From NCBI GenBank assembly GCA_044892525.1, contig CM097886.1, forward strand, positions 114,576,001 through 114,640,000: a DNA stretch of 64,000 nucleotides, read 5' to 3'. Source of the DNA: Schmidtea polychroa. Taxonomy: Eukaryota. How positions within the stretch are numbered: position 1 is the first letter of the stretch; each line of letters starts with the position of its first letter. The notes under the pieces are model-generated. The model did not search any database and was not told the origin of the DNA. It was given only the letters and a program-made list of their open reading frames with translations. Made by a program: the position numbers and the translations under genes. Below are positions 1 through 57,599 of the stretch, in pieces.

Positions 1-2
1 AA

Positions 3-3000
3 ATGCCATTCGGACTGACCAACGCACCAGCATCGTTTCAAAGGTGTATGAACTTTGTCACTCATGGAATCAAACAATGTATGGTATATATTGATGATTT
101 GTTAATCTATTCAGCGACATTTGAACAACATCTGGAGGATATCCGAAATGTATTTATTCGATTACGACAATGGAAACTCAAGCTCAAACCGTCAAAATGC
201 GACTGGTCAAAGGAAAAGGTCACGTTTTTGGGACACATAGTGTCAGCTAAAGGAAAGGAGCCAGATCCAAGAAACATTGAGAAAATAAAAACATGTCCAG
301 CACCGAAAACTGTCACCCAAGTTCAGGAATTTCTAGGATTATGCGGATACTATCGCAAATTTATCAAAAATTATGCAGGAATTGCAAAACCAATCCAGGA
401 ATTAGTAAAGAAAGACATTTCGTTCATTTGGGGGAAGGAACAACAAGAGGCGTTTGAAACGCTGAGAGACAAACTAATCGAAGCACCTATCCTCGTACAC
501 CCAGATTTCAAGAAACCATTTCTATTAGCAACGGATGCAAGCGGGTACGCGGCAGGCGCGATTCTGGGACAATTAGACGACGAAGGTAAAGAAAGAGTAA
601 TTGGATATTACAGTCGAACATTCAAAAAGCACGAGAAGAACTATTCGGTAACAGAACGAGAAGCATTGGCTATAATACAAGCAATCAAACATTTTCGATA
701 TTTGTTATGGGGACATGAGATATGTATAACCACAGATCATCAACCATTAGTGTGGCTAGGGCAACATAAAGAAGCGTCCAGTAGACTAATGAGATGGGCA
801 ATGCAGCTACAAGAGTATTCACCGTTCATAAAATTCAAAGCGGGAAGAGCGAATGCAAACGCCGACTGTATGTCAAGGTTTATTTTTCCAGATTTGGTAG
901 ATCCAGAAATGCAACGTATATGCCTGATGGTAGCAGAAGACCTAGATTTCTGCCAATTACGAAAAGACCAACAAGAAGACGCAGAACTGAAACAAATTAT
1001 CGATTATGTAAAAACAGGAAAGACGGAGGTATATGCGAAAGACCAAAAATTAAAAGAACATATGGATAAACACCGACACCGATATATCATAGAGAAAGAT
1101 TGGTTGCTGATAATGGATGGGGAAAAACGATTAATGTGTATACCGGAAAACCGACGGAAAGAGTTACTAACGCAATACCACGATGGGAGATTGGGAGGAC
1201 ATATGTCATCAAAAAAGACGTTAGCAAGAATGAAACAAAAATATTTCTGGCCTACCCTAACGGAAGACGTAACCGAATGGGTGAAAAACTGCATAACCTG
1301 TGCAACAAGGAAAAACACTGGATCGAAATGGAAAGCACCTTTGACGCCAATGCCGGTACCAATAGAGCCGATGACAATGATATCAATGGATGTAGTTGGT
1401 CCATTGCCAGAATCGGATAAAGGAAACGTTTATATTTTAGTGATTACAGACTTTCTCACAAAATTTCCAGAAGCATTCGCGATGCCAGACCAAAAAGCTA
1501 AAACAATCGCAAAAATCTTGGTCGAAGAGATATGTTGCCGTTACGGGACACCGAAGCAAATCTTGACTGATCAAGGAACTAATTTTATGAGTGAAATAAT
1601 GAGTGAGGTAACCAATTACTTCAAAATCGCAAAATTGAGAACATCACCGTATCATCCTCAAACCAATGGGATGACGGAAAGATTTAATGGAACACTTATA
1701 CAAATGTTATCAAACTACGTCGACCGTCACCAACGAGATTGGGACGAATATATAAACCTATGTCTTATGGCGTACAGAATGTCGATTCACGCATCAACGA
1801 AAATGAGCCCATTCAAATTAATGTACGGAAGAGAATGTAACATGCCAATGGACCTGGAATACCAACCACCGATATCGCAATACATGGAGATAGATGATTA
1901 TGTTACGAAATTCAAGGAAAGAATGCAGGAGATTTGGGAAACTGCGGGATTAAACATCAAGTTCTACCAGGAAAGTTATAAAGATTTACACGATCGAAAG
2001 AAAAACGTGAAGCAACATACGTTTCAAACAGGCGATTGGGTGATGATCGAGACCCCAGAATTAATTCCCGGAACCACAAGAAAGTTACAACGGAACGGGA
2101 AAGGACCATACGAGATCTTGTTCGTAGGCGAGACCAATGTAAGAGTGAAATTGGTAAATAATCCATTCACCAGGCCAATATACGTAAACGTGGCACGATG
2201 CAAATCAATTCCAAAAACAGCCACCAGTCAACCAGAAGGCCGTACATTAACCACACGTTCGCAAACCTACAGAATGAACATGATGCAACAACTCGCAGAA
2301 CCTATCACTGGACGATTGGGCATACAACCATCGGAAGCTGAAAAAATCGTACGAGAGGTAAAGATAAAATTACCCGGATGGGCAAAAGATCGATTAGATT
2401 TCGAAATATTAGGAGGATTATTGACGATGATCGAAAATTATGCAAACAGAGAGAGAACACATCCGTTATTACGAGTAGTCAAAAGCCAATGGCCAATATT
2501 ATTTACAATAACAGATCATTATGGAGATACACCATTACACAAGCTCATGAAAGTAGGTAACAACGAGCAAATACTAGAAACAATAGAAGCATTTCACGAC
2601 TGCAAGAGATCAACAGAACAAGAAAATAACCAAGGTTACACACCATTAATGATAGCAGCAAACAGAGGCAAAACAAAAGACATAATAACCGCATTACTTA
2701 ATACTGGATCAAAAATAACTACACAAGACCACGATCGGAAAAACGCACTACATCATGCTATCGAAGGGAAAAGTACCGAAGCGTTCACGTCGTTGATGGA
2801 GCTACTATCATATGAGGATAATCGAGAAGTCGGAAACATGTATGATGGATTATTAACAGCGATCAAAGAGAAACTGACAACAATTACCGGAGTATTAATC
2901 ACTTGGAGAAACCCAATTAAAAATAATTATATGATCAACTTAAACGAAGCATTCACGAGAGGAGAGAACACGCTTATGAGAGAAGCTATGAGAGGACATC

Positions 3001-3803
3001 ATTTATTCGAAATCCCGAATCAATTACTAGAACGAGGAATAACCTTCACAAATCATAAGGATGAGCAGTTATTAAAAAAGCGAATTGACACATTCGAAAA
3101 ATCAATATTCCAATTCATTACTCAGGTACGAAATAAATATTGGGGAACGGTAAGTGTGTTATACATGATGGACACGATGAACAACATCCGCGAGAATTAC
3201 CTAGATATTATTCAAATACTTACCGCAGAGGAACGAATCAATAATCCAACCGGAATGAAAATGAGAATAAGGCATGGGAAATCAAGAGAACCAAAGTCGC
3301 AAACGAACCATAAAATCGCAAATAAAGTCATCGAAACAAAATCAATGAGTATAGATCAAGGAGCAATAATATGCAAAGCGAAAGAAGTGTTCTTTGAGGA
3401 AATGCTAGAGCTACCAGATGAAGTAATATTATCAGAAATAATAAAAGCCGTACACACATACGCAAGAGATCAAACCACGGGTTTAGATATCGGGAAAATC
3501 AAAACCTTCTTACCTAGAGCATTTACGATGGTAACAAAGGATTCCAGAACACCTCTACAACAAGCAATACTGGTTGCAAAAGAAAATAGAGCAATAACGA
3601 TCGTGAGAATCCTTAGAGATATGGGCGAGGGAACCAACACGAAAAATGAACAAGGCGAAACGGCCATGATGTATGCAGCTATAACGAAAATACACCCAAA
3701 AACACTCCACATACTACATCAATCAGGATTGAGACTAGACGAAAATCAAACGAAGGGAACTCCACATTGGACTGGGCAACCATACAGCCAAACTTGGAAA
3801 TGA
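3..3803 (+). CDS. pol: Gypsy Pol (RT C-terminal part, RNase H, integrase) fused in frame to ankyrin repeats; 5' incomplete
   Basis: MPFGLTNAPASFQR and YIDD (RT); TDAS...TDHQPL (RNase H); HHCC zinc finger (HDGRLGGH...CITC); D,D35E core (SMDVVGP, TDQG, NGMTERFN); GPY motif. Ankyrin consensus follows: GDTPLH, GYTPLMIAA, KNALHHAI, RTPLQQAI, GETAMMYAA. Confidence 0.95.
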   Translation: MPFGLTNAPASFQRCMNFVTHGIKQCMVYIDDLLIYSATFEQHLEDIRNVFIRLRQWKLKLKPSKCDWSKEKVTFLGHIVSAKGKEPDPRNIEKIKTCPAPKTVTQVQEFLGLCGYYRKFIKNYAGIAKPIQELVKKDISFIWGKEQQEAFETLRDKLIEAPILVHPDFKKPFLLATDASGYAAGAILGQLDDEGKERVIGYYSRTFKKHEKNYSVTEREALAIIQAIKHFRYLLWGHEICITTDHQPLVWLGQHKEASSRLMRWAMQLQEYSPFIKFKAGRANANADCMSRFIFPDLVDPEMQRICLMVAEDLDFCQLRKDQQEDAELKQIIDYVKTGKTEVYAKDQKLKEHMDKHRHRYIIEKDWLLIMDGEKRLMCIPENRRKELLTQYHDGRLGGHMSSKKTLARMKQKYFWPTLTEDVTEWVKNCITCATRKNTGSKWKAPLTPMPVPIEPMTMISMDVVGPLPESDKGNVYILVITDFLTKFPEAFAMPDQKAKTIAKILVEEICCRYGTPKQILTDQGTNFMSEIMSEVTNYFKIAKLRTSPYHPQTNGMTERFNGTLIQMLSNYVDRHQRDWDEYINLCLMAYRMSIHASTKMSPFKLMYGRECNMPMDLEYQPPISQYMEIDDYVTKFKERMQEIWETAGLNIKFYQESYKDLHDRKKNVKQHTFQTGDWVMIETPELIPGTTRKLQRNGKGPYEILFVGETNVRVKLVNNPFTRPIYVNVARCKSIPKTATSQPEGRTLTTRSQTYRMNMMQQLAEPITGRLGIQPSEAEKIVREVKIKLPGWAKDRLDFEILGGLLTMIENYANRERTHPLLRVVKSQWPILFTITDHYGDTPLHKLMKVGNNEQILETIEAFHDCKRSTEQENNQGYTPLMIAANRGKTKDIITALLNTGSKITTQDHDRKNALHHAIEGKSTEAFTSLMELLSYEDNREVGNMYDGLLTAIKEKLTTITGVLITWRNPIKNNYMINLNEAFTRGENTLMREAMRGHHLFEIPNQLLERGITFTNHKDEQLLKKRIDTFEKSIFQFITQVRNKYWGTVSVLYMMDTMNNIRENYLDIIQILTAEERINNPTGMKMRIRHGKSREPKSQTNHKIANKVIETKSMSIDQGAIICKAKEVFFEEMLELPDEVILSEIIKAVHTYARDQTTGLDIGKIKTFLPRAFTMVTKDSRTPLQQAILVAKENRAITIVRILRDMGEGTNTKNEQGETAMMYAAITKIHPKTLHILHQSGLRLDENQTKGTPHWTGQPYSQTWK

Positions 3804-5491
3804 TCAGATTTATTTGCAAAAATGCGACAAAAGAAGAAGTTGAAAATATATGCAAAAACACATCTCAATTTCAATGGAATACGGTACGGAAAAATCTAGA
3901 AGCAATGAAATTGTTATTAACATGGAGAGTACCACAAAATAATAAATATGCGATAAATATAAACGAATTTTACGAAAACGGAGAAAACGCGATGGTAAAG
4001 AATACCCTAACTAAAGGGGGGACACCTAAAATTATCTTAATAGTATTAAATAGAGAAGACCTCAAATTCACGCAAAATCAAAACGAGCAACAACGAATAG
4101 GAAAACATCGTCGTATTCAATTGAGAGAATTAGTCAAGGAATGGAATAGAAAGAGACAAGCTGCAACGGGTAGAAAAGAGTTTGAATTCGAAGCAAAGTT
4201 AGCAAGGAACAGAGTGTTAACAGCATATCGCAGATTATTGAACGATATAAATGTCGAGGACGACATTTTAAACGACAGCGGGGGAGATAAACACGATGAC
4301 AATGACGGAAAAGGCCGAAAGGAGGATAAAGGGAAAAGAGAACCGGAAGAGGATAAACCGGAAAACAAGGATTCGGGTACGAGAAGAGAGGGAAACAGCC
4401 CGGGAACCAAGACCAAAGAGGAGGAAAAACCGAATAATGGAAAACAGAGGGTATGCCTACCGTTCACTAACAAAGAAATAGAAACAAATATGATCTTAAT
4501 GATAATCATGCTAACCATGATAGAGTTAGTAACAGCTCATGGAGGGACGAGAACGATAAAAGAAATCAAAGAAGCGGAGAATCAAGATAGCAAAGAGGAA
4601 GAACTAAAACAAGAAAAGAAAAAGCAAGCACAAGAGCAGCAGTGGGATTTAAAGGAAGAATGGGGCCTAAAGGAAAGGTGCATACTAGGAAGATGTATGT
4701 CTAGAGCGTATCAGAGATTAGTACTGATAAATGAGGACACAGAACCAATAACAGAGGTAAGAATACAAGAAGCATACCGAAATCGAGACGGGAAAAGAAT
4801 AACGAACGTAAAGGGAAAAGAGGTGCACCTAGGAAAAGGAGGTGAAGTAGTAATAACGCAACTCCAACCAAGAAAAGAACACAAAGTCTGTATTTCAAGA
4901 TTAGGACCAGGTGAGAGATGCCATCAATATGTGACGCAGCAGCAGCCCCCAAAGGAATACACGGTTTGTATCTGGAGGAACGAATCAAAAAGGGAATGCC
5001 GACGATACCCGGGGAAAAGAGGGAAGAAAAGAAAAAACAACGACGAAAAGGACGAAGGAGGAAAACACAAGAAAACCGGCGAGGAAGCCCAGGACAACTA
5101 CGTTTCAGAAGAAGAGATGGAAAAAATACAAAAGATGGCAAAGGAGGGTATGAACGAGGAAATAGCAAGAATACGAGAGATGATGAAAGGAAATGGCAAA
5201 AGAGGAAACGAGAAAAGTACAGAAGCGATATCAACATTAACAAACAAGGAAAAACCAGAGAGTATAAGCGTGAAGCAGAAGATGTGGATCAGCGGGATAA
5301 TAATAACAGGGGCATTCCTAATCATAACGGGGGGAACAATAAAAATAATTAAAGATAAACGACATCGCGGAGAACTAGAGATGACCCGAATCAGAAATTT
5401 CCAACATCGAGTGAAACGACCAAGTGATATCAAACAAGAACAGTGGGTGGAGGCCTGGAACGCTCAGCGCCCTCCAAAACCCCGTATATAG
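3746..5491 (+). CDS. Probable frameshifted continuation of Pol-ANK: one more ankyrin repeat, charged linker, internal signal-peptide-like segment, Cys/FN3-like ectodomain, TM helix, short tail
   Basis: The frame begins SNEGNSTLDWATIQPNLEMIRF (ankyrin consensus) where ORF1 loses ankyrin similarity; one extra A at 3742-3745 would join the frames. Hydrophobic MILMIIMLTMIELVTAHG at ~4490-4540; motifs ITQLQPRKEHKVCI and VTQQQPPKEYTVCI; TM MWISGIIITGAFLIITGGTIKII at ~5282-5350. Confidence 0.7.
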   Translation, partial: SNEGNSTLDWATIQPNLEMIRFICKNATKEEVENICKNTSQFQWNTVRKNLEAMKLLLTWRVPQNNKYAININEFYENGENAMVKNTLTKGGTPKIILIVLNREDLKFTQNQNEQQRIGKHRRIQLRELVKEWNRKRQAATGRKEFEFEAKLARNRVLTAYRRLLNDINVEDDILNDSGGDKHDDNDGKGRKEDKGKREPEEDKPENKDSGTRREGNSPGTKTKEEEKPNNGKQRVCLPFTNKEIETNMILMIIMLTMIELVTAHGGTRTIKEIKEAENQDSKEEELKQEKKKQAQEQQWDLKEEWGLKERCILGRCMSRAYQRLVLINEDTEPITEVRIQEAYRNRDGKRITNVKGKEVHLGKGGEVVITQLQPRKEHKVCISRLGPGERCHQYVTQQQPPKEYTVCIWRNESKRECRRYPGKRGKKRKNNDEKDEGGKHKKTGEEAQDNYVSEEEMEKIQKMAKEGMNEEIARIREMMKGNGKRGNEKSTEAISTLTNKEKPESISVKQKMWISGIIITGAFLIITGGTIKIIKDKRHRGELEMTRIRNFQHRVKRPSDIKQEQWVEAWNAQRPPKPRI

Positions 5492-5651
5492 AAAGGGATA
5501 TGACTGTATATAATTGTAAAAAGTAAGTATATCTTATGTATATAACAGTACTATATCTTTATATAAGCGCGGTATCAATATTATAAAATAACGGGGATCA
5601 TAAAATGAAATTAAATTTAGATAAGAGTTGAAAAGTGTATATAAATTAAGA

Positions 5652-5960
5652 ATGGAGCAAGGAAGTAACGAAATGAACCACAACACAGTAACCGAAGAAT
5701 TATGGAAGCAACAATGTGCCGTATTAGCACAATTAGTGTCTAATTTGCAAGAACAAGGATTGACGATGCAAAAGAACCTAATCGAGAGTATGAACAGAGG
5801 ATTTAGTTATTTGAAGATAATTGAAGACCAGAGGTTAAAAATCGAACAAATGCAAAGAGAAATAGAGAGGATAACTCAATATAGCCGAAGACAGGAAATC
5901 GAATTGGACAGAATGATGGAGGAAGCAGAACAGACAGAAATAGAAGACTGGTCAGAATGA
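5652..5960 (+). CDS. Element cargo ORF, short coiled-coil protein of unknown function
   Basis: Open frame with heptad-like E/Q/L pattern, same A-rich codon bias as pol, bounded by AT-rich spacers; ATG preceded by AG. Confidence 0.6.
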   Translation: MEQGSNEMNHNTVTEELWKQQCAVLAQLVSNLQEQGLTMQKNLIESMNRGFSYLKIIEDQRLKIEQMQREIERITQYSRRQEIELDRMMEEAEQTEIEDWSE

Positions 5961-6096
5961 CTAATGAGTAGAGAGGAGGGCGGACACGAAGCCGACTCTT
6001 CCGAACCATAAACCAAACCTAGCTTAAAATGTAAATAATTGTAAATAAAATATCGAACCTGTATCGATAAGAACTATATGTATATATAATTATAGA

Positions 6097-7485
6097 ATGG
6101 ATAAACGACAAAGAGAAGAGTTCAGAGAGATTGTCGAACAAGTCCGAAAATCTACAACGATCAGAATACACAAACATGTTATGTGCGGAATATGTGAAAA
6201 GTTGTTAAAGGAACCTCACCAAACCCAATGTGGATGCAGATTATGTAAGGAATGCATCAGTGAAGCAATAAAGAATAGACCACAGTGGTTCCCGGTGTGT
6301 AAAGAGACACTAATATCGAGTTTAGAAGACACTAACGAGGATAAAGCCGCAGTGAAAGACATGTTAAACACCAATCTGGGATGTAAAAATACCCCATGCG
6401 AATGGAAAGGAGTAATATGGAAAGTAGTGCAACATATGGGAGAATGTATGTACAGAATCGGCCAGTGTGAAAGGTGCCATAAAACCATTCGAGCAAGCGA
6501 AGAAAAAGAGCATCAAAGCCAGTGTGAAGAGAGACTAGAAAGATGTAAACATTGTGGAGAAATAGATACGTGGAAAAATCTCACCAGCAAACATCACAAT
6601 GTCCAAGAGGAAAAGGTATGTGCAGAGTTCAGTGGGGAATGCCCGAACGGATGCGAGGAAGGGAGAATAATAAAAATAGCCCAACACCTAAAGGAATGTG
6701 AAAGGAAAAGAATGACATGTGCACTCGGTAAATGGGGCTGTCAGAAACTACTACACCGAGGAGAGTTACCACATCATTTAGTAGAAAATGCTTCAACCCA
6801 CGCAGAAATGTGGTCGACTGCGTTACAAGAAAGTGAAGAGAAAGTAAAACAAATGGAGATAGAGATAACATCGTTGAAAGCGTTAGTCAAAGAACTACTA
6901 GAAGAAAGAGAAGCGTTCGAAGAAGCCCGAGCTAACATAAAGATGCAAATAAATCGTATAAAAATCAGTAATAATCAGGCCAAGGAGCTACATCGGAAAA
7001 TACAGGAAATAAATCTAAATGAGATAACCCCAACAGCACCTTATATATGGAAGATAACGGGAGTGAAAGAAAGAATACGGAAAGCCAAAACTGGGGAAGA
7101 GACAAGAATAACAAGTCCTGCATTCCATTCTTGGAAAAATGGGTACAAGATGAAAATGAGGATATATACCAACGGAGATGGAGCCGGATTGAATACACAT
7201 TTTTCGATATTTTTTCTATTATGTAAAGGGGAACGTGACGAGGTAATAGAATGGCCATTCCAGGCAAAAATCGATATCACAATGATGAATGACCAAAGCA
7301 TCCACGAACAAAGCTTCAAAACAACGGGAACCCAGCTGTGTTACCGGCGACCTACTGATGAGGAAGGAGCAGCATCAGGAGCACCCACGTTCATCTTACA
7401 GCAGAAGGTGGAAGAGATGACAAAAAACGACACAATATATATAAAAATGACAGTGAGAAGGGAAGGGAAGGGTAGAACGGAGTAA
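6097..7485 (+). CDS. traf: Intronless TRAF-family protein (RING, TRAF zinc fingers, coiled coil, MATH) inside the retrotransposon
   Basis: RING CGIC...CGCRLCKEC...FPVC; several C/H zinc fingers; coiled coil; MATH domain YIWKI...SPAF...GYKMKMRIYTNGDG...THFSIFF...EWPF...GAPTFI. 462 aa, uninterrupted. Confidence 0.95.
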   Translation: MDKRQREEFREIVEQVRKSTTIRIHKHVMCGICEKLLKEPHQTQCGCRLCKECISEAIKNRPQWFPVCKETLISSLEDTNEDKAAVKDMLNTNLGCKNTPCEWKGVIWKVVQHMGECMYRIGQCERCHKTIRASEEKEHQSQCEERLERCKHCGEIDTWKNLTSKHHNVQEEKVCAEFSGECPNGCEEGRIIKIAQHLKECERKRMTCALGKWGCQKLLHRGELPHHLVENASTHAEMWSTALQESEEKVKQMEIEITSLKALVKELLEEREAFEEARANIKMQINRIKISNNQAKELHRKIQEINLNEITPTAPYIWKITGVKERIRKAKTGEETRITSPAFHSWKNGYKMKMRIYTNGDGAGLNTHFSIFFLLCKGERDEVIEWPFQAKIDITMMNDQSIHEQSFKTTGTQLCYRRPTDEEGAASGAPTFILQQKVEEMTKNDTIYIKMTVRREGKGRTE

Positions 7486-7677
7486 CCCATCGAATAATGT
7501 TGTATATAATAACCTGTATATATCGGCGTATATAACCAATAAAATATTATATAATAATAGTATGAAAAACCCTAAATACGAAAACCCAAAAATGATGCGA
7601 AAATTTCCGAAGAACCAGTAACTAATGAATAAAATTTTTCCATAATAAAAAGATTAATCTATATCAATGATTTAGAA

Positions 7678-8733
7678 ATGACACAAGAGAGAATAACCGA
7701 AACTACGATAGCCCCAACCAATACCCACAAGACACAAATTCCCCGAGAATATAACGAAAAATGGAACAAAGTAATGTTCCAACTAACTAACCTCACCCGA
7801 AACTACATCAAAGAAGCTAGAGAAGATGAGAACAGTAAATATCAATGGCTAATCCACAATTTAAGAGAGGAAGCAGAAGCATGTAAAAGAGCATCAAAAT
7901 GGGATTCATTAGAAAATACCCGCCAAGAAGCACACAGCCACTACTTAAAGCAGCTAGTGCAGGAAGCGAGAAAGAGGCTCACTGACGAAAACGCAAAACG
8001 CGAAGCGGAAAAGCAAATAGAAGGAAGGAAAATGATGCATTTATTGGCAGAGGCCAGAAAATGGAAAAGACAAAATAGTGAAATGAAAAAAGAGATGAAA
8101 GAATTGCCCATGAGACTCGGATATGAAAGCGAACAGGGCAAATGGGAGGAAAATTTAATAATAAAGGAAGAACTGAAACGGTTGAGAAAGGTCGCCACCC
8201 GAAGCCAAACATGGCAGATGAAGGCCATGGAGTTCGAGCGACATTTGGCAATGAAATGCGACATAAGAGAGCACGAGAATGCCGCAATGGAGGAGATGAT
8301 AACCCAACAAGCAGGACGGGTTTTGGAATTAGTAAATCAGGTCGTAGAGATGAAACGAGACCTCAATGGATTACAGGGATCACTAGAACAAAGAAACATG
8401 GTCCTAGCTGGAAAAAACAAAAAATTAGAAAACGAGAGGAAAATGTATGCCGAAAATATCAAAAACTTGGAAATAGAAATTGAAAAATGGAAGGGCGACG
8501 AGAAAATCAAGGCCCTAGATAGACAAATAGAGATGAAAGACGAAGAGACAAGGTATCTCACCTACCTGCTCGACGAAGAGCTGAATATCACTCGAGCTCT
8601 AAGAGACGAAGTTAATGAATTGAGAGCTCAAATCCCCCAATATTACCTACCTTATGACCCTATTGCGATACAGTTGCATCCAGCGGTCGATAGTGATGAA
8701 GGTTATGTGGGACAGGAGGAAACCTTCGTATAA
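7678..8733 (+). CDS. Element cargo ORF, long coiled-coil protein
   Basis: 351-aa open frame, E/K/R/L-rich heptads, element-type codon bias, TTTAG just before the ATG. Confidence 0.75.
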   Translation: MTQERITETTIAPTNTHKTQIPREYNEKWNKVMFQLTNLTRNYIKEAREDENSKYQWLIHNLREEAEACKRASKWDSLENTRQEAHSHYLKQLVQEARKRLTDENAKREAEKQIEGRKMMHLLAEARKWKRQNSEMKKEMKELPMRLGYESEQGKWEENLIIKEELKRLRKVATRSQTWQMKAMEFERHLAMKCDIREHENAAMEEMITQQAGRVLELVNQVVEMKRDLNGLQGSLEQRNMVLAGKNKKLENERKMYAENIKNLEIEIEKWKGDEKIKALDRQIEMKDEETRYLTYLLDEELNITRALRDEVNELRAQIPQYYLPYDPIAIQLHPAVDSDEGYVGQEETFV

Positions 8734-8904
8734 AGGTGAATAAAAAGATAAAAACAAAAAAAATCGGGACGTATATCCCAAACAAAAAAAAATTAAAGTA
8801 TTGTAAAAGTATTCAAGGGATTGTAACCCAAACTATTAAATTTTATATAAATGTATAAGTATAAGTCGTACTATAGCGCACCATTAACTGTACATATTAT
8901 AGAT

Positions 8905-9594
8905 ATGAAAATCGAGGAAATGATAGAAATCACGAGTGACGTGGAAGAAGGAGAAATTGTAACAGAAACAACAGAAACACAAACGCTAGAAGCAGAGTTG
9001 CGAGCAGAGAAGTGTGAAAACGAGAGACTGGTAAACAAATACATAGAAGATCGAAAAATAATAAAGATACTAAAGAAAGAATGCAGAGTGCTAGGGGAAG
9101 TAAAAAGAGAAACAGAAGAGGAAAACGAATGGCTGCAAGAACAACGAAAACGAGGGAGAAATTGGGAGAAGATTGCGGAAGAATTATGGCAAGAAAGGGC
9201 CAGTAGAAAGGCAGACGAAGTGATTAGCGATTATTGGAAAACCGAGGCACGGAAACACCAAGAAAGTTTGAAGGAGTTACAACTCCAACTGCACCAAAAA
9301 CAAAAGGAATGCGAGATAATGAAAAGAATGAACAGCAAATACCACGAAATCGACGACGGAGAAGACGAGGAAAGGGGAAATGATTTCTTACAAATACTAA
9401 ACCATAAAAACCTGGAAAGAGCAACGCAGGAAATAAAAGTGTTAAAAGGGAAAATAAAGTTCCTAGAACAACAGATAGACGAAAGAGATAAGCAACTAGA
9501 AGTACTGCCAGAATTGAGAAAACGGGTAATAAAAGCGGAAACGGAAGTGATGAGAGCGTCTCAGAAAGCCCGTAAAAAGAAATCCCGACCATAA
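8905..9594 (+). CDS. Element cargo ORF, coiled-coil protein with basic C-terminus
   Basis: Open frame (track start 8851; ATG 8905 after TATAG preferred), E/K-rich heptads, ends RKKKSRP. Confidence 0.7.
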   Translation: MKIEEMIEITSDVEEGEIVTETTETQTLEAELRAEKCENERLVNKYIEDRKIIKILKKECRVLGEVKRETEEENEWLQEQRKRGRNWEKIAEELWQERASRKADEVISDYWKTEARKHQESLKELQLQLHQKQKECEIMKRMNSKYHEIDDGEDEERGNDFLQILNHKNLERATQEIKVLKGKIKFLEQQIDERDKQLEVLPELRKRVIKAETEVMRASQKARKKKSRP

Positions 9595-9649
9595 ATTAAA
9601 AAGGGATAATTGATGTAAATAAATGTATATAAAATGTTCGCATATTAGT

Positions 9650-10303
9650 ATGTGGCCGGAAGCAACCCTGATGACCCTAATAATGATAACAATAAACGGA
9701 ATGCCCATGCGGCAGTCAGCCCCAAACCCCTGGGAGAACCCCGAGAAACAGCAAAGCCGATTAATCAAACTGAAAAATGAAAGAAAACCCTCCAACAATA
9801 TCCCGAAACAATGCTGGAACAAAGCCGTCTGGCAAAAGACCCAAAGACAACTGAATCTGCAATCTCAAAGAATCGAACAACTTGAAACCCTCCTACATGA
9901 ACAAACCACCCAACAGTCTCTGAAAGAAACCCTCGTAAAGAAAGAAATAAAAGAAAGTCAAGCCCTATTCTATGTTACCATTAGTGAAACCATCCTCATC
10001 TGCGCGCTAATCATCTGGAAGACATATGATATCTATCGAGCATGGAACAGAACCCAACCACTATCCGAGAGACCCAAAAGAAAGAACCTACGATTCCGAA
10101 ACGTACATAAACAAGCAGTACATTGTCAACAACCGGACCCACTCGACCAAATACAACAAAATCTGTCTTCTAATCAAATACCCGTTACAATCCAGCTCTC
10201 CACAGTAACAACTTCAACCAACCCTTCAAGCCAGAATCCCAGAGATCCCCAAAAGGTAGTTAACCGAAACAGTAGTAACATGTCGAACATTGAAATCCCG
10301 TGA
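9650..10303 (+). CDS. Element cargo ORF, predicted type I membrane protein (signal peptide, coiled-coil ectodomain, TM, S/T/P/Q tail)
   Basis: MWPEATLMTLIMITING N-terminus; TM ALFYVTISETILICALIIW; low-complexity tail. Confidence 0.65.
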   Translation: MWPEATLMTLIMITINGMPMRQSAPNPWENPEKQQSRLIKLKNERKPSNNIPKQCWNKAVWQKTQRQLNLQSQRIEQLETLLHEQTTQQSLKETLVKKEIKESQALFYVTISETILICALIIWKTYDIYRAWNRTQPLSERPKRKNLRFRNVHKQAVHCQQPDPLDQIQQNLSSNQIPVTIQLSTVTTSTNPSSQNPRDPQKVVNRNSSNMSNIEIP

Positions 10304-10854
10304 CAGTAATTTGATGTATATAATTCCGGTCACCCTAAGTGGCCACTGCTTGCTTATATTTGTCTTATTATCTGTTTAATTAAAGTATTAGTCAGTTAAT
10401 TTGTTTTTATGTCTGTACGTATTTTGATTGTGGAAGTTTTGTGTTATAACAACAGAGGTATGATTAGAATGTATGTCATTATGCGAATTGCGGGACGCAA
10501 TTTTGATGGGTCCCCGAGTGATTTGTTGGGCTGAATCGAAGGGTAGCTGGGAAATTAGGTCGAATTTAACTAAAGTAAAAATAAGAAATAAAATAAATAG
10601 ATTGACGAATAAAATAGAATAGAACATAAGAAAAACAATAATTAGAAATAAGAATTAAAACAAAAAAAAATATGAAAATAAGAAAAATTAAAATAGGACA
10701 ATAGAATGACAGAAAATAACGCAAAATATAATAAATAATAAGGAAATTAAGGAAAATAAATAAAAACATAATTTTAATAAAGAAAATAAGAAGAAATAAC
10801 TCTAAAACAAGGAAAATAAATTAAATTAATAAAATTAAGCGGTACTCAATTCTG

Positions 10855-10920
10855 ATTGGTCCGCGCAAACAAAAAATTAATATATAAGCAGGCATTAAAA
10901 TCATAATAATTACAGTTAAT
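10855..10920 (+). promoter_or_regulatory. LTR promoter: inverted CCAAT (ATTGG 10855-10859), TATA (TATATAAG 10881-10888), Inr-like CAGTT at ~10913
   Basis: ATTGG and TATATAAG occur in the same order in the LTRs at 24823-24860 (-) and 33575-33600 (-). Confidence 0.75.
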
Positions 10921-10936
10921 CTAACCACCTCAATAG

Positions 10937-10983
10937 GTAAGTAAAGTTTAAAATAATCACAGTTAATCTAACCACCTCAATAG
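10937..10983 (+). other. Predicted 47-nt LTR mini-intron (GTAAGT...CTAAC...ATAG) whose last 25 nt duplicate exon 1
   Basis: Direct repeat ACAGTTAATCTAACCACCTCAATAG at 10912-10936 and 10959-10983; the first copy is followed by GTAAGT. Confidence 0.7.
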
Positions 10984-13215
10984 ATCCATTCTACGACGAA
11001 ACCGCAATTAAACAATCAATCCACAGCAACTCACGAGGACTATTCCGGAATCCAAGAAATTTCAGCTGAATCTAGATAATTTCGAACATTTATTACTTCG
11101 ACACAGTACCCCTTTTCGACTCAGCCTATACCTCTATTAAACACTCGGTAAGGATCTTTTGATTTCATAATTTGAATTTTAAAGTAATAGTTATGCATAT
11201 GATTTAATTATAATTTTAATTTAAAGAACTTGTTTTCTTTTCGTTTGATTTCGAATACTTGGTGTAATTTAACGATTTAGTATTTAACAATAAATGATTT
11301 GCTATGAATGATTGATTTCTAGGAATTATTGACTTTTATGAACTGTTTTAATGAGTTATTATTTAATGCCATTCAAATTTTCGAGAAACGTGGCGTTGAT
11401 ATACTCTAGTGTCATGGTGTGAGGTGCCTTCGGGAGCTCCACCGGTGGGCCTAGGGTATTTCAATCACGCAGCTGATTCGGGCCGTAATGTGGGGGCTTC
11501 CTCACGGGTCCGTCGCTGAAGGTGCGACTAAATCCTATAGGAAAATGTTGCCAGAAAATTGGTAGTCGTATAGCGATGGAAAATAGAGATGTAGGAAGAA
11601 ACGTTCAGAGAGTTTTTATGTATTCGCGCAGTGATTGAGGGTGTCACACTATCGTCTCAAGATATCGTTTCTACTAAGCCCAAATTTCCTCTATCGCTCT
11701 AAAGCTCTATGTAGGTTGCTCATCGAGAGTCGTTCAAATGCTATAGGTGACATATCTTCGATGCTCGTATGTTTCACTCGAAATTTATACCTACTATGTT
11801 TTATGGCCTTCCGTGTTATTATTTTCCTCGTCTACGTGTTCTCTCAAAGATGAAGCTGCAGGGGATTACAGAAAATAAGTAGTCTCGGATGAGCGTTAGA
11901 ATTCCATGAACAAGTTGTCTCGCATAAAATTTTGAATTACGTAAAACGGGTTACTTCAACTATTTTTGAATTGTATAAAATGATTTACTTCAATTGATTT
12001 TAGAATTATATAAAGGGATTAACTTCCACAAATTTTTCTAATTACATAAACCGGTTAGTGCCAAATAATCTCAAGAGTAAAACGAAATCAAATCGAGTCA
12101 AAAAATATATTTTTTTTTACAAACCAATCTAACATGATAATCCTTACCTAGTAAATATAAATTACCCGTGTTTCATGGAGTTGATAATCCAGCGAGGATA
12201 GGTAGGAAATCTCCAAAATATCGGGAACGGATCAATAAACCGCATTTGAGGAGTTGAGAAGTTCCCCCTGGGGGGCAAATTATATCCAACTCTTGCGATA
12301 CCGAGAATCATAATTTTTCCAGCATTTCCGTGAGAATTAGTATGACATCATCATGAGCAAGGAAATGTGAGCATCTGTGCAGTGGGTTGATCGAGATAGT
12401 AGCCAGAGAACATGCCAGCATGTAAACAGTTGAGGGCATCAGTTAGTCATTAGGAGTGGAATTAAGTATGAGAAATAAAAACTTGCATACGTCACCCGTT
12501 TTCAGACACACTACAGTAGCTAATCACGGTGTGTAGATTCACACCGACTTGTACTCATAACAAACCAGACCGGACGTGTCAGCTGGAATTTTTGGGTTAT
12601 CAAATTAAATCACTCGCAGTCATTAGATTCCCACTGGTCGGAACTAATAGCCAACTGTCAGACTGATTTTGTCTACTTAGTAGGATTAATTTAGTTATTA
12701 TCTCATGTTGAATAATTTGTCGCCTATCATAAATAAATAATTAAAAATTTTTTTTTAATGTCTTCCCGTTCATCATAAATGAACTAATTAAGAATAATTT
12801 ATGGATTTCTATTCACCCTAAATAATTAATCTAAAATTAATCGACCTACGTACAGGATACATTCATCGAAACGATTTGTTAGGAAAAGTCGGCAATGTAA
12901 TTCAACTCTCTTCAAACGTTAATTACTAACTTCAAGCGATTTAGATAACCGTAGTTTCCTCGACCTAGAATTCCTCTCACCAGTAGTAATACCTCTCCTT
13001 ACTTGTGCAAAATCGTGCTTGACTGATTTATTTTCTTATAATTAATGACCCAAAGGGAACGAGGACCCATAGCGCAGTTGAATTTCTTTGGCTGATACAC
13101 CCATTCTTGTCTATGAAACCAACTATGATCAGTAAAATATAAATGTGACCAGACGACGACCTTCTAATTGATTTGATTTGTTGTTCATTTCCATCTTTTC
13201 TTGCAGTCACCCAAG

Positions 13216-14064
13216 ATGTTACCCAATTCCAAGACCATTCTCAGACCTTGTTTCTCTTGTTCAGACAAGAATTCAATCATCAAGGATCTGCAGGCCCAAA
13301 TCGGAAAGTACAAGAGAAAAATAGACGAGTTAGAGGGGACATGGTTTAGTCCTACCCAGATGAAAGAGGCTCAGAAGAAGCTGCACCGCAGCGAGCACTG
13401 TCGAGATGCGCTAATTTCCGAAAGTCGGGCGCAGAGAAGCCTAATAAAGGAGCAGTCGGAGGCGCTGCACAAGTTATACGTCCAAGCAGCAACCACTAGG
13501 AGAATCGCGAAGATCCCAATTAATGAAGCCAGTAATCTTTTTCCAGCGCACCACGAGATCTCGGGCGGGCCTTCATCTCCACCTGGGAAGTCCTGCCATG
13601 GGTGCGTGGAGACCGAGCTCTCTCCCAGTGGTCCAGACGTTGTATTCACCGGAACTAATAAAGTGCAGCCAAACACCGCATCGTCCTCAATCGTGCAAAC
13701 CCCAACAGCTTCAAAACCTAAACGTCGGCAACTGTCGCGCGCCGAACGAAAACGAAAGCAACGAGAGCGGGCTTCCATCAAACGGATTCTACCATCAACC
13801 GTCACCCCAGTCGACGGCAACAGCAATCCAATAGTAGTCGATCTAACGACCGGAATCTCAGGGCGAGTCATCTCCGCCGCCGGGGTAACATGGGAAGAAA
13901 ACGCCGCCGAATTCTTTGATTTAAACGAGTTACTCGCCGACTCGGAGTGGGAAAAATGGGAATTGCTCCGTAAACTGGCCTCATCTTCTAGAGAGACCTG
14001 GACATCTTCTGACATCATTGTTTACCCTTGTGTTTTCCCTATTCTTAGGAATTTTGGTATATAA
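13216..14064 (+). CDS. LTR-encoded 282-aa protein (CxxC + coiled coil, Arg/Lys-rich motif, acidic-aromatic C-terminus), predicted spliced
   Basis: Intact ORF. Polypyrimidine-CAG acceptor at 13204-13206, donor GGTAAG at 11147-11152, AATAAA at 14096-14101; all are conserved in the solo LTR. Homologues at 21762-22505 and 30791-31646. Confidence 0.8.
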   Translation: MLPNSKTILRPCFSCSDKNSIIKDLQAQIGKYKRKIDELEGTWFSPTQMKEAQKKLHRSEHCRDALISESRAQRSLIKEQSEALHKLYVQAATTRRIAKIPINEASNLFPAHHEISGGPSSPPGKSCHGCVETELSPSGPDVVFTGTNKVQPNTASSSIVQTPTASKPKRRQLSRAERKRKQRERASIKRILPSTVTPVDGNSNPIVVDLTTGISGRVISAAGVTWEENAAEFFDLNELLADSEWEKWELLRKLASSSRETWTSSDIIVYPCVFPILRNFGI

Positions 14065-14520
14065 GTGTTCAATGTACTTGTATAATAATTCTGACAATAA
14101 ACCATTCTCGTCTATATATGTGTTTTTGTTTATCTTAAAATAGTCGATCTGAAATTGGTGAATAACATTGAGAGTCGTAGAAAATGAGGAGCATTAGTCA
14201 GTTGGCAACCCCAGCTAGGAACCTTGCGATGGGGTGATGGAATGATTAGACGTAAGTCCTTCTATCGGCAGTCAGGGTTGGGAAGTCGAGGCCTCAGTAA
14301 GGAGTAGTCCGAAGGAGCTGGCTCACCTGCTTACTGGCGTCTCGCCGGCATAGCACAGTTCCAACGTGAAGCAATTCACGGGTGCTATGTTGGAATGTAG
14401 GTTATGTGCGGGTCCTGCTTGGCGATGACAAAACGAAGGACGAGCGAAATCGATGTGGGCATTCATCCTCTAGACTGAAAGCTGCACTAAAAGGGGTCAT
14501 CCGAGTAGCTACCCGCAACA

Positions 14521-17500: not shown

Positions 17501-18175
17501 GACAGTCTATTTTAGTGTGGCCTGTTTTGTGGCATAGCCAGCACTCTGGTTCTTCTCGTCGCCTTCCTTCTTCTCTTTCATCTCTTTGCTTGTACTGTCC
17601 TCTTCTCTGTGGATCCTGATAGACCACTCTTGCATAACTTTTCATAGCGTTTATCTGATCTCTCTGTTTGTCAACTTTATTCATCATAATTAATGTTTCC
17701 TTTATTTCCTCTGTGCTTTTTATTTTTACCAATATTACTTCTTTCTCAACTTCTTTATTCTCAAACAACTTGTTGGCAAGGTCCTCCATTTTTTTAAATA
17801 TGTTTCAATCTCTTCGCCTCTTCTTTTATAATTCAATAAACTTTCCATATCATTTATTACATCTCTTTCTTAATCAAATGCCATTCGTAACTTGACTTGA
17901 AATCCCTCTGCTCTTTTAACTGTCTTAGCATATTTCTCCAATAGATCCTCGTCGATCATGCATGCAGTCAATCTTTTCTGTTCTTTTTTATTGATGCCTT
18001 TAGCATCGAAATAAATCTGGCATCTTCTAATGAATTTTTCTAAACTTTCACCTTGCCAGAACACCTTTGGCAATAATCTTTCAGTAATCACGTCAGTGTT
18101 TACCGCTGCCACCATATTATAATTCTCATCCGTTACAACATTAACATCTGGTTCCAAATCACTAAATAACTCCAT
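14521..18175 (-). mobile_element. Decayed conventional Ty3/gypsy element (gag with CCHC knuckles, protease, RT, RNase H, integrase), interrupted in IN by the giant element
   Basis: CWLCHKTGH and CWTCHRSGH knuckles; LLDT*A protease site; YLDD; DTDASF; fragmented by stops and frameshifts. Confidence 0.9.
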
Positions 18176-18616: not shown

Positions 18617-19216
18617 ATGGCATATTCCAGATCTTTTGGAAACGTTTGGACACTTTTAAAAGAAAACGCATTTCAACAAGTCGACATATCTGATGATATT
18701 TTGTGCTTAATTTGTAAGAAAATTATGGTCAATTCACAAAATGGACCATGTGGTTGCAGATACTGTTTGGAATGCATAACAAATCATCTAAATGAAAACA
18801 ATCATCAATGCCCTGGCACTACAGAACTTTGTGAAAATGAACAATTAACTCTTGATAATTTGCAGACTGATAATGCTATTAATGTGAAAATTTCAAGAAC
18901 TGTCGTAAATTGTCCATTTCAAAATTGCCATTATCAAAATGAACTTAAACTTATTGGAGACCACATAATGGCGTGTAATTTCCGTGAAATTAATTGCCCA
19001 CTTACCGAAATCGGATGTAAAAAAATGAATTTGACCAGTGATTATATGCTAAATCATTTTAAATCGGAAATCGTTTCTCATTCAACATTATTTTTGGAAT
19101 GTTTCGATAATATGAAAAATGAAATTGAATCTCAATCAAAAATTCTAAAAGAAATGAAAGAAGAAAACCAATTAATGAATGAGAAAATTTTAGCACTTGA
19201 ACAAGCAAATCAATCG
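18617..19216 (+). CDS. traf: Host TRAF gene, coding exon 1 (RING, zinc finger, start of coiled coil)
   Basis: CLIC...CGCRYCLEC...CPG RING; CPFQNC and CPLTEIGC fingers; phase-0 GTAAAT donor at 19217; upstream TTTCAGCAG acceptor near 18588. Confidence 0.85.
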
Positions 19217-50518: not shown

Positions 50519-50810
50519 TTTTTCTGGATAAATCTTTAGTCCTGCTTCCTCGTCTGCTTTTAATACTTCACTGAGTATTGTATAATATTTTTCTTTACTG
50601 GTCGAATAAATAAGAATGTCATCCAAATACATCATTGTCCCATTTATTTTGTCTATTAACTTTGTAATCATTTCCTGGAACGTACCTGGTGCTGCGGCAA
50701 TTCCGAATGGCATTCTATTGAAATAGTATTGCCTTTCTTTGTTGAGAAGGCTGTTTTCCCTTGCGCTTCTTTGTCTAACTCCACTTGGTAATATGCATTA
50801 CCAAGGTCGG
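50519..50810 (-). pseudogene. Gypsy RT fragment closely related to ~15870-16160
   Basis: DLGNAYYQVELD...MPFGIAAAPGTFQ...YLDD. Confidence 0.85.
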
Positions 50811-51005
50811 TTGGTAAATTACTAAATAACTTTATAAATTTTATTTAATCAAATTTCAATCTTCCTTTTAAAATATTTTTGATAAAATTATTTTTAAAAT
50901 TTCTAATTAAAATTTTTAGAATCTTTCATCCTCCCCCTACGGATAATTATTAATGGGATCTGATTGAATGAATATTGGAGTATTATTGTCTAAAAGTTCG
51001 TTTGG

Positions 51006-57480: not shown

Positions 57481-57599
57481 CTCTTTCCGTGAATTGTTGT
57501 CTTTAAAGGTCCACAAAAATCAATAAAAATCGTCTCAAATAAATGAGAATTATTATGTTTTAAACTAGTTTCTTTCGTTCGTATTGTCAATGTTTTTCA

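Follow-up and report, generated by a model that had tools for sequence, protein, structure and literature searches.

The 462-codon open reading frame at positions 6097–7485 (+ strand) of the analyzed stretch of Schmidtea polychroa DNA (64,000 nucleotides, called the window below) encodes a complete TRAF protein, and at this one locus it is probably a genuine, assimilated accessory gene of a Burro-like giant Ty3/gypsy LTR retroelement (endogenous retrovirus-like). TRAF modules in giant planarian elements have already been published; what sets this case apart is a stand-alone TRAF ORF that lies 3′ of pol amid orphan ORFs. The features of this ORF, its domains, its codon usage and its RING ligands are far beyond chance expectation.

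Domain architecture and fold of the TRAF protein

The ORF and the domains of its product are as follows, with the evidence for each in brackets.

6097–7485 (+): TRAF ORF, ATG start, 462 codons, uninterrupted (ORF listing and translation)
6181–6300 (+): RING finger, residues 29–68 (alignment of TRAFs, PDB matches)
6373–6786 (+): five TRAF-type zinc-finger units, residues 93–230 (PDB, conserved columns, model)
6790–7014 (+): coiled-coil (TRAF-N) helix, residues 232–306, 75 residues (AlphaFold2 model, TRAF3 structures)
7042–7461 (+): MATH/TRAF-C domain, residues 316–455 (Pfam, PDB, Foldseek)

The full order of RING, zinc fingers, coiled coil and MATH domain, which a first-pass annotation had read from the nucleotide sequence, is borne out by Pfam, PDB, AlphaFold2 and Foldseek comparisons. 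The MATH domain scores 89.2 bits against Pfam TRAF-mep_MATH (cut-off 27.4) and 85.6 bits against MATH_2, and the TRAF domains of TRAF2 and TRAF3 in the PDB match the protein at E ~3e-27. Its RING and zinc fingers match the N-terminal structures of TRAF6, TRAF5 and TRAF2 (E 4e-13 to 5e-8), with the RING–zinc finger chains of TRAF6 and TRAF5 aligning to residues 22–155 (E 4e-13 to 1e-12), and TRAF3 coiled-coil-plus-MATH structures in the PDB align from residue 247. Pfam zf-TRAF gives no match at E ≤ 0.01, and all Pfam RING models fall under their cut-offs, as they also do with related planarian TRAFs; the zinc-finger Cys/His columns are ≥90% conserved in an alignment of 63 TRAFs.

The AlphaFold2 model (mean pLDDT 92.4) has a RING at about residues 29–68, five beta-beta-alpha zinc-finger units, a single helix at residues 232–306 and a MATH sandwich at residues 316–455, and Foldseek pairs it with TRAF3, TRAF2 and TRAF1 at probability 1.0 and per-target TM-scores of 0.72–0.84. 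Domain order and fold are thus those of cellular TRAF2 and TRAF3 (PDB 1ca9, 1f3v, 8t5p, 8zuk) and of the TRAF6 RING–zinc finger region (5vo0, 3hcs), and the MATH motifs R-I-Y, N-G-D-G and A-S-G-x-P are common to both in the PDB alignment. The element protein differs from cellular TRAFs in its low identity to them (~30%), in having Cys as fourth and Phe as seventh RING ligand and in residing on a mobile element. Human TRAF2 has a Ser-Ser-Ser stretch, which we take to be a contact to receptor peptides, that is not conserved in the PDB alignment; the binding partners of the element TRAF are not predictable.

The protein aligns end to end with planarian TRAFs of 448–511 aa (for example, residues 23–455 with residues 31–464 of relative P0003). 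The ORF is, as had been claimed, free of introns. A sense-strand gene carried through an RNA genome is expected to lack introns in any case, so their absence is by itself no proof of capture from an mRNA.

The surrounding element and the likely origin of its TRAF gene

The TRAF ORF lies in a one-strand array of six ORFs whose 3′ end is at a 4 kb LTR. The parts of the element, together with the related LTR and the host TRAF pieces found in the window, are these.

3–3803 (+): pol ORF, 5′ end truncated where the window begins; RT tail, RNase H, integrase (H2C2 and rve) and C-terminal ankyrin extension
2562–2801 (+): ankyrin-repeat stretch in the pol C-terminal extension, residues 854–933 (Pfam Ank_2; PDB to E 6e-15)
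3767–5491 (+): ORF2, 574 aa, orphan, two hydrophobic segments
5505–10322 (+): TGTANATA / TGTATATAA motif array in the spacers that separate the accessory ORFs, before as well as after the TRAF ORF
5628–5960 (+): small ORF, 110 aa, orphan
7678–8733 (+): accessory ORF, 351 aa, orphan, coiled coil suggested by amino acid composition
8851–9594 (+): accessory ORF, 247 aa, orphan, coiled coil suggested by amino acid composition
9623–10303 (+): accessory ORF, 226 aa, orphan, one hydrophobic segment
10524–14520 (+): 3′ LTR, 3997 bp, ends TGTTGG...CAACA; its limits coincide exactly with those of the homology to the second LTR copy
13201–14064 (+): conserved protein-coding ORF inside the 3′ LTR (comparison with the solo LTR copy)
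18617–19216 (+): candidate host TRAF exon with RING, zinc fingers and coiled-coil start; GT donor, phase 0
21199–25184 (−): solo LTR of the same family, ATAG on both sides, in a putative host TRAF intron
53102–53656 (+): candidate host TRAF MATH exon, AG acceptor before it, phase 0
57115–57578 (−): host TRAF piece

The Pfam matches of the pol ORF are RT_RNaseH (3e-39), Integrase_H2C2 (3e-21), rve (5e-13) and Ank_2 (3e-16); its RVT_1 match begins only at profile position 119, the window starting inside RT. The start of ORF2 and the end of pol share 37 nt, read in different frames, and the N-terminus of ORF2 is a paralog of part of the pol tail (35% over 60 aa, against pol residues 964–1022); ORF2 has no Pfam or PDB match, and the 351-aa ORF likewise has no PDB or Pfam relative. 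The 4-bp duplication (ATAG) that flanks the solo LTR, the TG...CA ends of the multi-kb LTRs and the RT–RNase H–integrase order are Burro-like traits; the 5′ LTR of the element copy falls beyond the window. TRAF and ankyrin modules are both present, whereas the portion of the element covered by the window showed no BIR or Bcl-2 module.

We also note that the LTR of the element contains a constrained gene: the products of the ORF at 13201–14064 and its counterpart in the solo LTR are 89% identical, with dN/dS of 0.14 and 14, 15 and 52 differences between the two LTR copies at first, second and third codon positions, respectively.

The first-pass annotation placed the TRAF gene within a retrotransposon, and at this locus the assignment holds, with the pol ORF and its ankyrin tail on the 5′ side, the LTR on the 3′ side, and the same strand and composition throughout. 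An A-rich strand skew runs unbroken across positions 1–10,300 and ends at the LTR. At third codon positions the TRAF ORF has A at 0.45 and T at 0.17, and the other element ORFs have 0.39–0.51 and 0.10–0.17, whereas T3 in the host TRAF exons is 0.37–0.40. Relative synonymous codon usage (RSCU) of the TRAF ORF correlates at 0.82 with that of the other element ORFs and at 0.30 with that of the host exons, in agreement with the earlier statement that its codons match the element rather than the host TRAF. Such wholly element-like composition points to long residence of the TRAF gene in the element lineage.

Spacers between the accessory ORFs carry a common motif from directly after ORF2 to directly before the LTR. 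The window has six exact TGTATATAA matches, against 1.7 expected, and every one of them falls within 5505–10322 on the + strand; the same holds for 12 of the window's 27 TGTANATA matches. Related loci show no enrichment of the motif. This clustering of the UGUANAUA motif in the spacers is a side finding, and the motif resembles a Pumilio-type RNA site. AG-ATG contexts precede three of the accessory ORFs. A scan for bacterial-type promoters and terminators, a model ill-suited to a eukaryote, gave counts at the level of shuffled sequence.

Host TRAF pieces at three places in the window, and the many nested transposon fragments elsewhere in it, might suggest that a host TRAF gene merely sits between unrelated transposon fragments in a TRAF-rich region. 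We find this hardly conceivable and reject it, because the composition of the strand stays the same from pol through the final ORF and differs from that of host exons, the same-strand ORFs are packed only 30–600 nt apart with LTR homology starting only at 10524, and the spacer motif is common to the whole array.

It is extremely unlikely that the ORF is a processed copy of some host TRAF mRNA that landed by chance in one copy of the element. The TRAF ORF is intronless while the neighboring host TRAF, with its host-type codon usage, appears to be split into at least two exons, and an AATAAA lies ~55 nt past the TRAF stop codon, both of which such a retrocopy could account for. The first-pass annotation had named a poly(A) or target-site duplication of the ORF's own as the mark of a processed pseudogene; neither was found in the TRAF flanks, nor is there an A-tract or a nested repeat around the ORF, and no repeat of ≥24 nt occurs anywhere in 3500–10600. 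Element-type codon usage, spacer motifs on both sides of the TRAF ORF that are those of the neighboring ORF spacers, 23% identity to the host TRAF and ≤41% identity to any known TRAF likewise argue against it, and we regard it as largely refuted.

The nearest relatives of the element TRAF are triclad planarian TRAFs. An exhaustive search of 1.84 billion protein cluster representatives returned no relative above ~41% identity, a word-indexed protein search found one relative (36%), and an exact-sequence look-up gave no match; scans of JGI metagenome contigs and IMG/VR were likewise negative, and no second copy of the family's internal region turned up. Within the 64,000-nt window, tblastn with the element TRAF found the host exon only, at 23% identity. 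The named members of the surrounding group, which are the closest named proteins, are all triclad: Dendrocoelum lacteum TRAF-2, -4 and -5 (T1DF65, T1DBK6, T1D122) and Dugesia japonica TRAF-2-like A (D5JG59). These are 448–511 aa long and have Cys at the fourth RING ligand, like the element TRAF, but are only 24–34% identical to it.

A neighbor-joining tree places the element TRAF among triclad TRAFs, in a clade with P0001, P0016 and P0017 (83% bootstrap) and, with P0003 added, at 100%. Three of these four (P0003, P0016 and P0017) are UniParc-only entries, and P0001, P0016, P0017 and a further relative, P0126, are truncated. This grouping with flatworm TRAFs makes an origin in the host lineage likely. 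The idea of a retro-captured host paralog therefore stands as far as its flatworm ancestry is concerned, but not as a recent copy of the adjacent host TRAF: capture from that gene in recent times is rejected, as the exon at 18617 is 23% identical and no protein exceeds ~41%.

We suggest that an ancestor of the element family acquired a TRAF gene long ago from the flatworm TRAF repertoire, and that passage through an RNA genome would have kept it intron-free. The TRAF may be expressed from a subgenomic or processed transcript, at which the spacer motifs and AG-ATG contexts hint.

RING ligands and likely activity

Seven of the eight RING metal ligands are present in the element TRAF, and the seventh position is Phe. 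The first-pass annotation had drawn attention to CGC in place of the usual CGH, also in the host TRAF exon, and this is correct in that the fourth ligand is Cys both in the element TRAF and in the ORF at 18617. Among 125 aligned TRAFs the fourth-ligand column holds His in 72 and Cys in 26, the Cys set being the planarian-type group, so that this substitution is shared with the triclad relatives. The other change that had been pointed out, Phe for the penultimate RING Cys, is equally real and is unique in the same alignment: of the 117 sequences with a residue in this column, 115 have Cys, one has Leu, and only the element TRAF has Phe. Because Cys is retained there by the four closest relatives whose sequences reach the RING end, Phe may be confined to this element copy or to a subfamily of recent origin.

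RING domains that lose one ligand of their second zinc site are usually inactive. With one such ligand missing, the E3 function of the element TRAF is probably weakened, as judged from its residues. A fully active E3 ligase, in which the unusual RING folds and recruits an E2 so that the element ubiquitinates host targets and no decoy is involved, is very unlikely. In its favor, planarian-group TRAFs normally have Cys as the fourth ligand, and AlphaFold2 still models the RING region at pLDDT 77–95. The near-invariance of Cys at the seventh ligand and the lack of any other Cys or His nearby in the sequence around the Phe argue the other way. Confidence drops to 77 at residues 61–70, and since AlphaFold2 models no metals, the RING pLDDT is no proof of zinc binding.

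Phe could instead be the private mutation of a dead insertion, the TRAF belonging to the family but being inert in this copy, a passenger in decay and no decoy. The single occurrence of Phe in 117 sequences, with Cys kept in the nearest relatives, would fit such decay, as would the inactivity of most insertions of such families. The six ORFs (3126 codons), however, are open despite 561 site-equivalents at which new stop codons could arise, from which it follows that the copy has changed little since insertion. Neutral divergence since insertion is thereby bounded at about 0.5% or less, and given that bound the chance of a private change at any RING ligand codon is about 10% or less, which is small but not negligible. 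Apart from the Phe, every zinc-ligand column is preserved, as are the coiled coil and the MATH core, all modeled at high confidence, and we consider decay of the TRAF gene unlikely.

If the TRAF is an assimilated accessory gene, as we favor, its product would trimerize through the coiled coil and dock through the MATH domain onto host receptors or adaptors, where it could bend TRAF-dependent immune, stress or cell-death signaling in the cells that express the element. With its E3 function probably weakened, it might serve chiefly as an adaptor or decoy. The dominant-negative forms RING-less TRAF1 and RING-deleted TRAF2 keep the coiled coil and MATH domain and have no ligase function; the element TRAF differs from them in having a RING, one ligand short. 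By this analogy, a decoy or dominant-negative role is plausible. A decoy or rewiring mechanism taken by itself, as suggested by domain content, is a tentative proposal that we hold to be possible but rather less than probable.

Comparison with known systems and implications

Burro and GYPSM1 are giant gypsy-like LTR retrotransposons of Schmidtea mediterranea, reportedly described by Jurka in 2007 and by Grohme et al. in 2018. To our knowledge, retroelements that keep host-derived signaling genes are rare outside the vertebrate retroviruses, the chief example among invertebrates being the Burro-like elements of planarians. A total length above 30 kb, with gag and an in-frame env upstream of pol, is among the traits by which such elements are recognized. 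The element described here resembles Burro/GYPSM1 in its Ty3/gypsy pol, multi-kb LTRs, A-rich coding strand and host signaling or cell-death modules. The accessory modules of Burro-like elements comprise RING, coiled coil/Smc, MATH_TRAF_C, ankyrin, BIR and Bcl-2-like domains, and a signaling role for the TRAF would be in keeping with the ankyrin module of this element and with the Bcl-2-like and BIR modules of its relatives.

RING-Smc-MATH_TRAF_C modules are known in Burro/GYPSM1 elements, including Burro ORF1 (Arkhipova & Yushenova 2019, PMC6431247), and Burro-like elements with TRAF, ankyrin and cell-death-control modules have been reported (PMC6431247). A Burro-like element of Girardia (Dugesia) tigrina has TRAF as a separate accessory ORF (PMC6431247). 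The position of the module distinguishes these elements. In Burro1 it is fused into ORF1, between gag and the SUMO-like/Bcl-2 region and upstream of pol, and the separate TRAF ORF of the Girardia element lies upstream of ORF1, whereas the TRAF of the window element stands alone on the 3′ side of pol, in the company of five orphan ORFs, and the ankyrin repeats of this element are at the pol C-terminus rather than before the protease. The window element may be the same as Burro-2, -3 or -4.

The pol in the window is 48–50% identical to Pol of three Burro-like loci (L001, L002 and L005). The order in the related loci is gag, Bcl-2-like, mononegavirus-type env, protease, ankyrin, RT, RH and IN, and gag, Bcl-2, env, PR, RT, RH, IN is the Burro layout in print (PMC6431247). 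Ahead of its pol, L001 has a gag-CCHC domain, a weak Bcl-2 match, a Monjiviricetes-type env, a protease and ankyrin repeats. Neither TRAF nor any of the other 3′ ORFs was found in L001–L005 by tblastn and profile comparison, and so TRAF is no requirement across the lineage.

TRAF folds are also encoded in viral genomes. Homologs from megalocytiviruses/iridoviruses and klosneuvirus-type giant viruses are found by Foldseek at E 2e-21 to 9e-15, but these are DNA viruses of fish or protists, their TRAFs are 14–24% identical to the element TRAF, and several are without parts of the architecture. The viral TRAFs are clearly acquisitions independent of that of the element; presumably they serve to interfere with host signaling.

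The TRAF/MATH family of Schmidtea is expanded (PMC6109357). A bolder proposal is that the disabled RING is a trait of the whole element family, making its TRAF a trimeric decoy against the expanded host TRAF network, and that element-borne TRAFs, which would include the one described here and the truncated P0001, P0016, P0017 and P0126, make up or seeded part of the planarian expansion. We consider this decidedly unlikely; if true, it would mean gene flow in both directions between a retroelement and the host immune repertoire.

What this locus offers is a complete TRAF as a separate, assimilated gene in a new position, beside an LTR-borne gene and a spacer motif. Should the pattern hold across copies, it would add one family, and no new category, to the catalog of giant retroelements, and genes borne by elements may have been included when the planarian TRAF/MATH expansion was counted. 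It would then also give a sequence-level handle on how such elements meet the innate-immune and cell-death pathways of their hosts.

The TRAF gene and the retroelement around it

The TRAF ORF belongs to a + strand series: pol, ORF2, a small ORF, TRAF and then three further orphan ORFs.

Features of the TRAF-bearing element
3–3803, + strand: pol ORF, cut inside RT by the window edge; RNase H, integrase H2C2, rve, and ankyrin repeats in a C-terminal extension
3767–5491, + strand: ORF2 (the ORF after pol), which has a segment paralogous to pol
5628–5960, + strand: small ORF between ORF2 and TRAF
6097–7485, + strand: TRAF ORF, 462 codons, ATG start, uninterrupted
7678–8733, + strand: orphan ORF 3′ of TRAF
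8851–9594, + strand: orphan ORF 3′ of TRAF
9623–10303, + strand: orphan ORF 3′ of TRAF
10524–14520, + strand: 3′ LTR, 3997 bp, TGTTGG...CAACA ends
21199–25184, − strand: inverted second LTR copy, 86–90% identical, ATAG on either side

The domain order given in the first-pass annotation (RING, zinc fingers, coiled coil, MATH) is real. Pfam finds MATH/TRAF-C at residues 316–453 (89 and 86 bits, cut-offs 27 and 32) and RING matches at residues 29–68 below threshold only. Among solved structures, the C-terminal half resembles the TRAF domains of TRAF2, TRAF3, TRAF1 and TRAF5 (E about 3e-27), and the N-terminal part the RING-zinc-finger structures of TRAF6, TRAF5 and TRAF2 (E 4e-13 to 5e-8). An AlphaFold2 model made with 63 homologues (mean pLDDT 92.4) has a RING, five beta-beta-alpha zinc-finger units (93–230), a 75-residue helix (232–306) and a MATH sandwich (316–455), and its top Foldseek matches are TRAF3, TRAF2 and TRAF1. 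The zinc fingers, coiled coil and MATH core are intact. Planarian TRAFs of 448–511 aa align over the full length of the protein, so the gene is indeed intronless, as had been proposed.

Since the LTR runs from 10524 to 14520 and pol lies upstream, TRAF sits in the internal region of the element, between pol and the 3′ LTR. An A-rich strand skew is continuous from position 1 to about 10,300, and none of the listed ORFs is broken by a stop, a frameshift, an insertion or a deletion. The overlap of pol and ORF2 in different frames is, in this one copy, compatible both with a native arrangement and with a single frameshift. The repeat at 21199–25184, flanked by a 4-bp target duplication, is a solo LTR.

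A processed pseudogene inserted into one copy of the element would carry its own target-site duplication or poly(A). We found no A-tract 3′ of the TRAF stop codon, no direct repeat bracketing the ORF, and no direct or inverted repeat of at least 24 nt in 3500–10600. Moreover, the spacers that flank TRAF share a short motif with those of the neighbouring ORFs: all six exact matches to TGTATATAA in the 64 kb window lie on the + strand at 5505–10323 (1.7 expected window-wide), and 12 of the window's 27 matches to TGTANATA fall on that strand in the same interval. The processed-pseudogene reading is therefore rejected, and TRAF is an integrated gene of the element. Neither the window nor the sequence collections searched hold a second copy of the internal region. 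Several of the motifs lie 12–16 nt past a stop codon (ORF2, TRAF and the last ORF) and three within 70 nt upstream of the TRAF ATG; their core fits the Pumilio/PUF recognition consensus, UGUANAUA. No enrichment of the motif was seen in loci related to the element.

Codon usage had been described as matching the element and not the host, and this stands. Third positions of the TRAF ORF are 0.45 A and 0.17 T, within the range of the other element ORFs (A 0.39–0.51, T 0.10–0.17), and third-position T is 0.40 in host TRAF exon 18617 and 0.37 in host MATH exon 53111. In RSCU, TRAF correlates at 0.82 with the pooled codon counts of the other element ORFs and at 0.30 with the host exons. Thus, the gene is assimilated to the composition of the element, which points to long residence there and not to a fresh capture.

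The 3′ LTR stops exactly at the end of an older, unrelated gypsy-type element (14521–17789, − strand; gag with a CCHC knuckle at 17133–17789, pol pieces at 14521–16556 that are 27–38% identical to Burro-like Pol), and this boundary indicates a nested insertion. The LTR itself contains an ORF on the sense strand (13201–14064, +; about 247 aa) with a counterpart in the solo LTR (21762–22505, −). The two are 89% identical in amino acids, their 81 nt differences fall 14/15/52 by codon position, and with a dN/dS of 0.14 the ORF is under purifying selection between the copies; a Pfam search with it gave no match. The LTR of MMTV likewise carries a protein-coding gene, sag.

RING ligands and the origin of the Phe

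Two features of the RING noted from the sequence alone, "CGC" and a Phe in place of a Cys, were placed in an alignment of 125 TRAFs (123 homologues from an exhaustive protein search over 1.84 billion cluster representatives, and two window sequences). Both are present. At the fourth metal ligand 72 sequences have His and 26 have Cys, and the Cys set includes the element TRAF, host exon 18617 and the planarian-type group; thus "CGC" marks the flatworm TRAF lineage and is not special to this gene. At the seventh ligand 115 sequences have Cys and one has Leu; the element TRAF alone has Phe, and all four nearest relatives that cover the stretch keep the Cys. Seven of the eight ligands are in place.

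The Phe could be private to this copy or inherited from its source. The element's six ORFs (3126 codons) are all open despite 561 site-equivalents at which a substitution gives a stop, so neutral divergence since insertion is about 0.5% or less (95% level). With so little divergence, the probability that any of the eight ligand codons took a private non-synonymous hit is at most about 10%, which favours, without proving, inheritance from the source copy.

Relatives of the TRAF and of the element

The exhaustive search returned 5485 relatives of the TRAF, with a maximum identity of about 41%. The best named matches are from triclads (Dendrocoelum lacteum TRAF-2, -4 and -5; Dugesia japonica TRAF-2-like A), and further out the named sequences are from cnidarians, one sponge and one echinoderm. 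A neighbour-joining tree of 63 sequences groups the TRAF with the related proteins P0001, P0016 and P0017 (83% bootstrap), rising to 100% once P0003, a complete TRAF of 469 aa, joins; deeper nodes are weak, and these four are UniParc-only entries without genomic context. P0001 shares an unusual C-terminal tail with the element TRAF. The closest relatives, P0001, P0016, P0017 and P0126 (265–392 aa; P0126 is UniParc-only as well), have its N-terminal leader and lack most of the MATH domain, where P0017 has extra coiled-coil sequence instead; such entries may reflect gene prediction across TRAF modules that belong to elements.

Host TRAF pieces also lie nearby, so the element landed in or beside a host TRAF cluster.

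Host TRAF pieces in the window
18617–19216, + strand: candidate RING/zinc-finger exon, phase-0 GT donor at 19217
53102–53656, + strand: candidate MATH exon, preceded by a phase-0 AG acceptor at 53102
57115–57578, − strand: further MATH fragment, the third host TRAF piece

Planarian TRAFs cover residues 1–286 on the first piece and 257–447 on the second, so placed that one host gene appears to be split into two exons 33.9 kb apart. Between these exons lie the solo LTR, fragments of other transposons and assembly gaps. This neighbouring TRAF is only 23% identical to the element TRAF and is ruled out as its donor. The proposed capture of a host TRAF is partly supported: the flatworm affinity and the residence in a retroelement with element codon usage hold, and a fresh capture from the neighbouring gene is rejected. 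The window also contains a DDE_1 (Tigger-type) transposase ORF and more gypsy RT fragments (46302–47351, 58732–59535 and 50447–50829, all −), and segmental repeats at 42759–43750 and 49498–50501 (70–97% identical).

The closest Pol proteins (48–50% identity) come from ENA assemblies. In L001, one of five related Burro-like loci (L001–L005), a 2713-aa ORF comprises gag (Ty3 capsid, CCHC), a weak Bcl-2-like match, a Monjiviricetes-type fusion glycoprotein, protease and ankyrin repeats, and is followed by PR-RT-RH-IN. This is the published layout of the Schmidtea mediterranea Burro/GYPSM1 giant gypsy-like elements, whose ORF1 carries a RING (AIR1), an Smc-like region and MATH_TRAF_C, as well as BIR, ankyrin and Bcl-2-like motifs (PMC6431247). 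Expansion of TRAF/MATH genes in planarians is also documented (PMC6109357). Thus, the core of the finding is known biology, and the locus belongs among the giant Burro-like retroelements with TRAF modules.

What differs is position. By published description MATH_TRAF_C lies inside ORF1 of Burro/GYPSM1, and the Girardia (Dugesia) tigrina element has it in a separate upstream ORF (PMC6431247), whereas here TRAF forms an ORF of its own 3′ of pol, with a row of orphan ORFs around it; the ankyrin repeats are at the pol C-terminus, and not ahead of PR-RT-RH-IN as in L001. TRAF and the other 3′ ORFs are absent from L001–L005, so accessory content differs between families. A fragment of another Burro-like element lies at 33725–36253 (−). 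Its ORF encodes a domain of the Monjiviricetes-type fusion glycoprotein (E 1e-37), shares 32% identity with the env portion of L001 ORF1 and follows the element in its codon usage.

Possible action of an element-borne TRAF

The MATH domain, aligned to solved structures, keeps R-I-Y, N-G-D-G and A-S-G-x-P and lacks the TRAF2 Ser-Ser-Ser stretch, residues that presumably bear on partner docking. The element TRAF would be expected to trimerise and dock onto host TRAF partners. Because one ligand of the second zinc site is missing, its ligase activity is probably weak, and its role would then be that of an adaptor or decoy. In three accessory ORFs, TRAF included, an AG precedes the ATG by one or two bases, only a hint of putative splice acceptors.

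Iridoviruses and giant viruses encode TRAF homologues, a functional precedent for an element-borne TRAF. A separate ENA metagenome scaffold (L006; 12,458 nt, densely coded) has an intronless TRAF (P0036, 2195–3586) that belongs to the planarian-type group, a BIR-plus-RING IAP-like gene (6821–8053), a dynamin-like GTPase and numerous orphan ORFs, and resembles part of a large DNA virus or other mobile element with host-derived cell-death genes. For Burro, the modules have been suggested to interfere with host apoptosis and ubiquitination (PMC6431247). The present finding would be of more interest if the disabled RING is a conserved trait of the family, or if element-borne TRAFs feed the host TRAF expansion.
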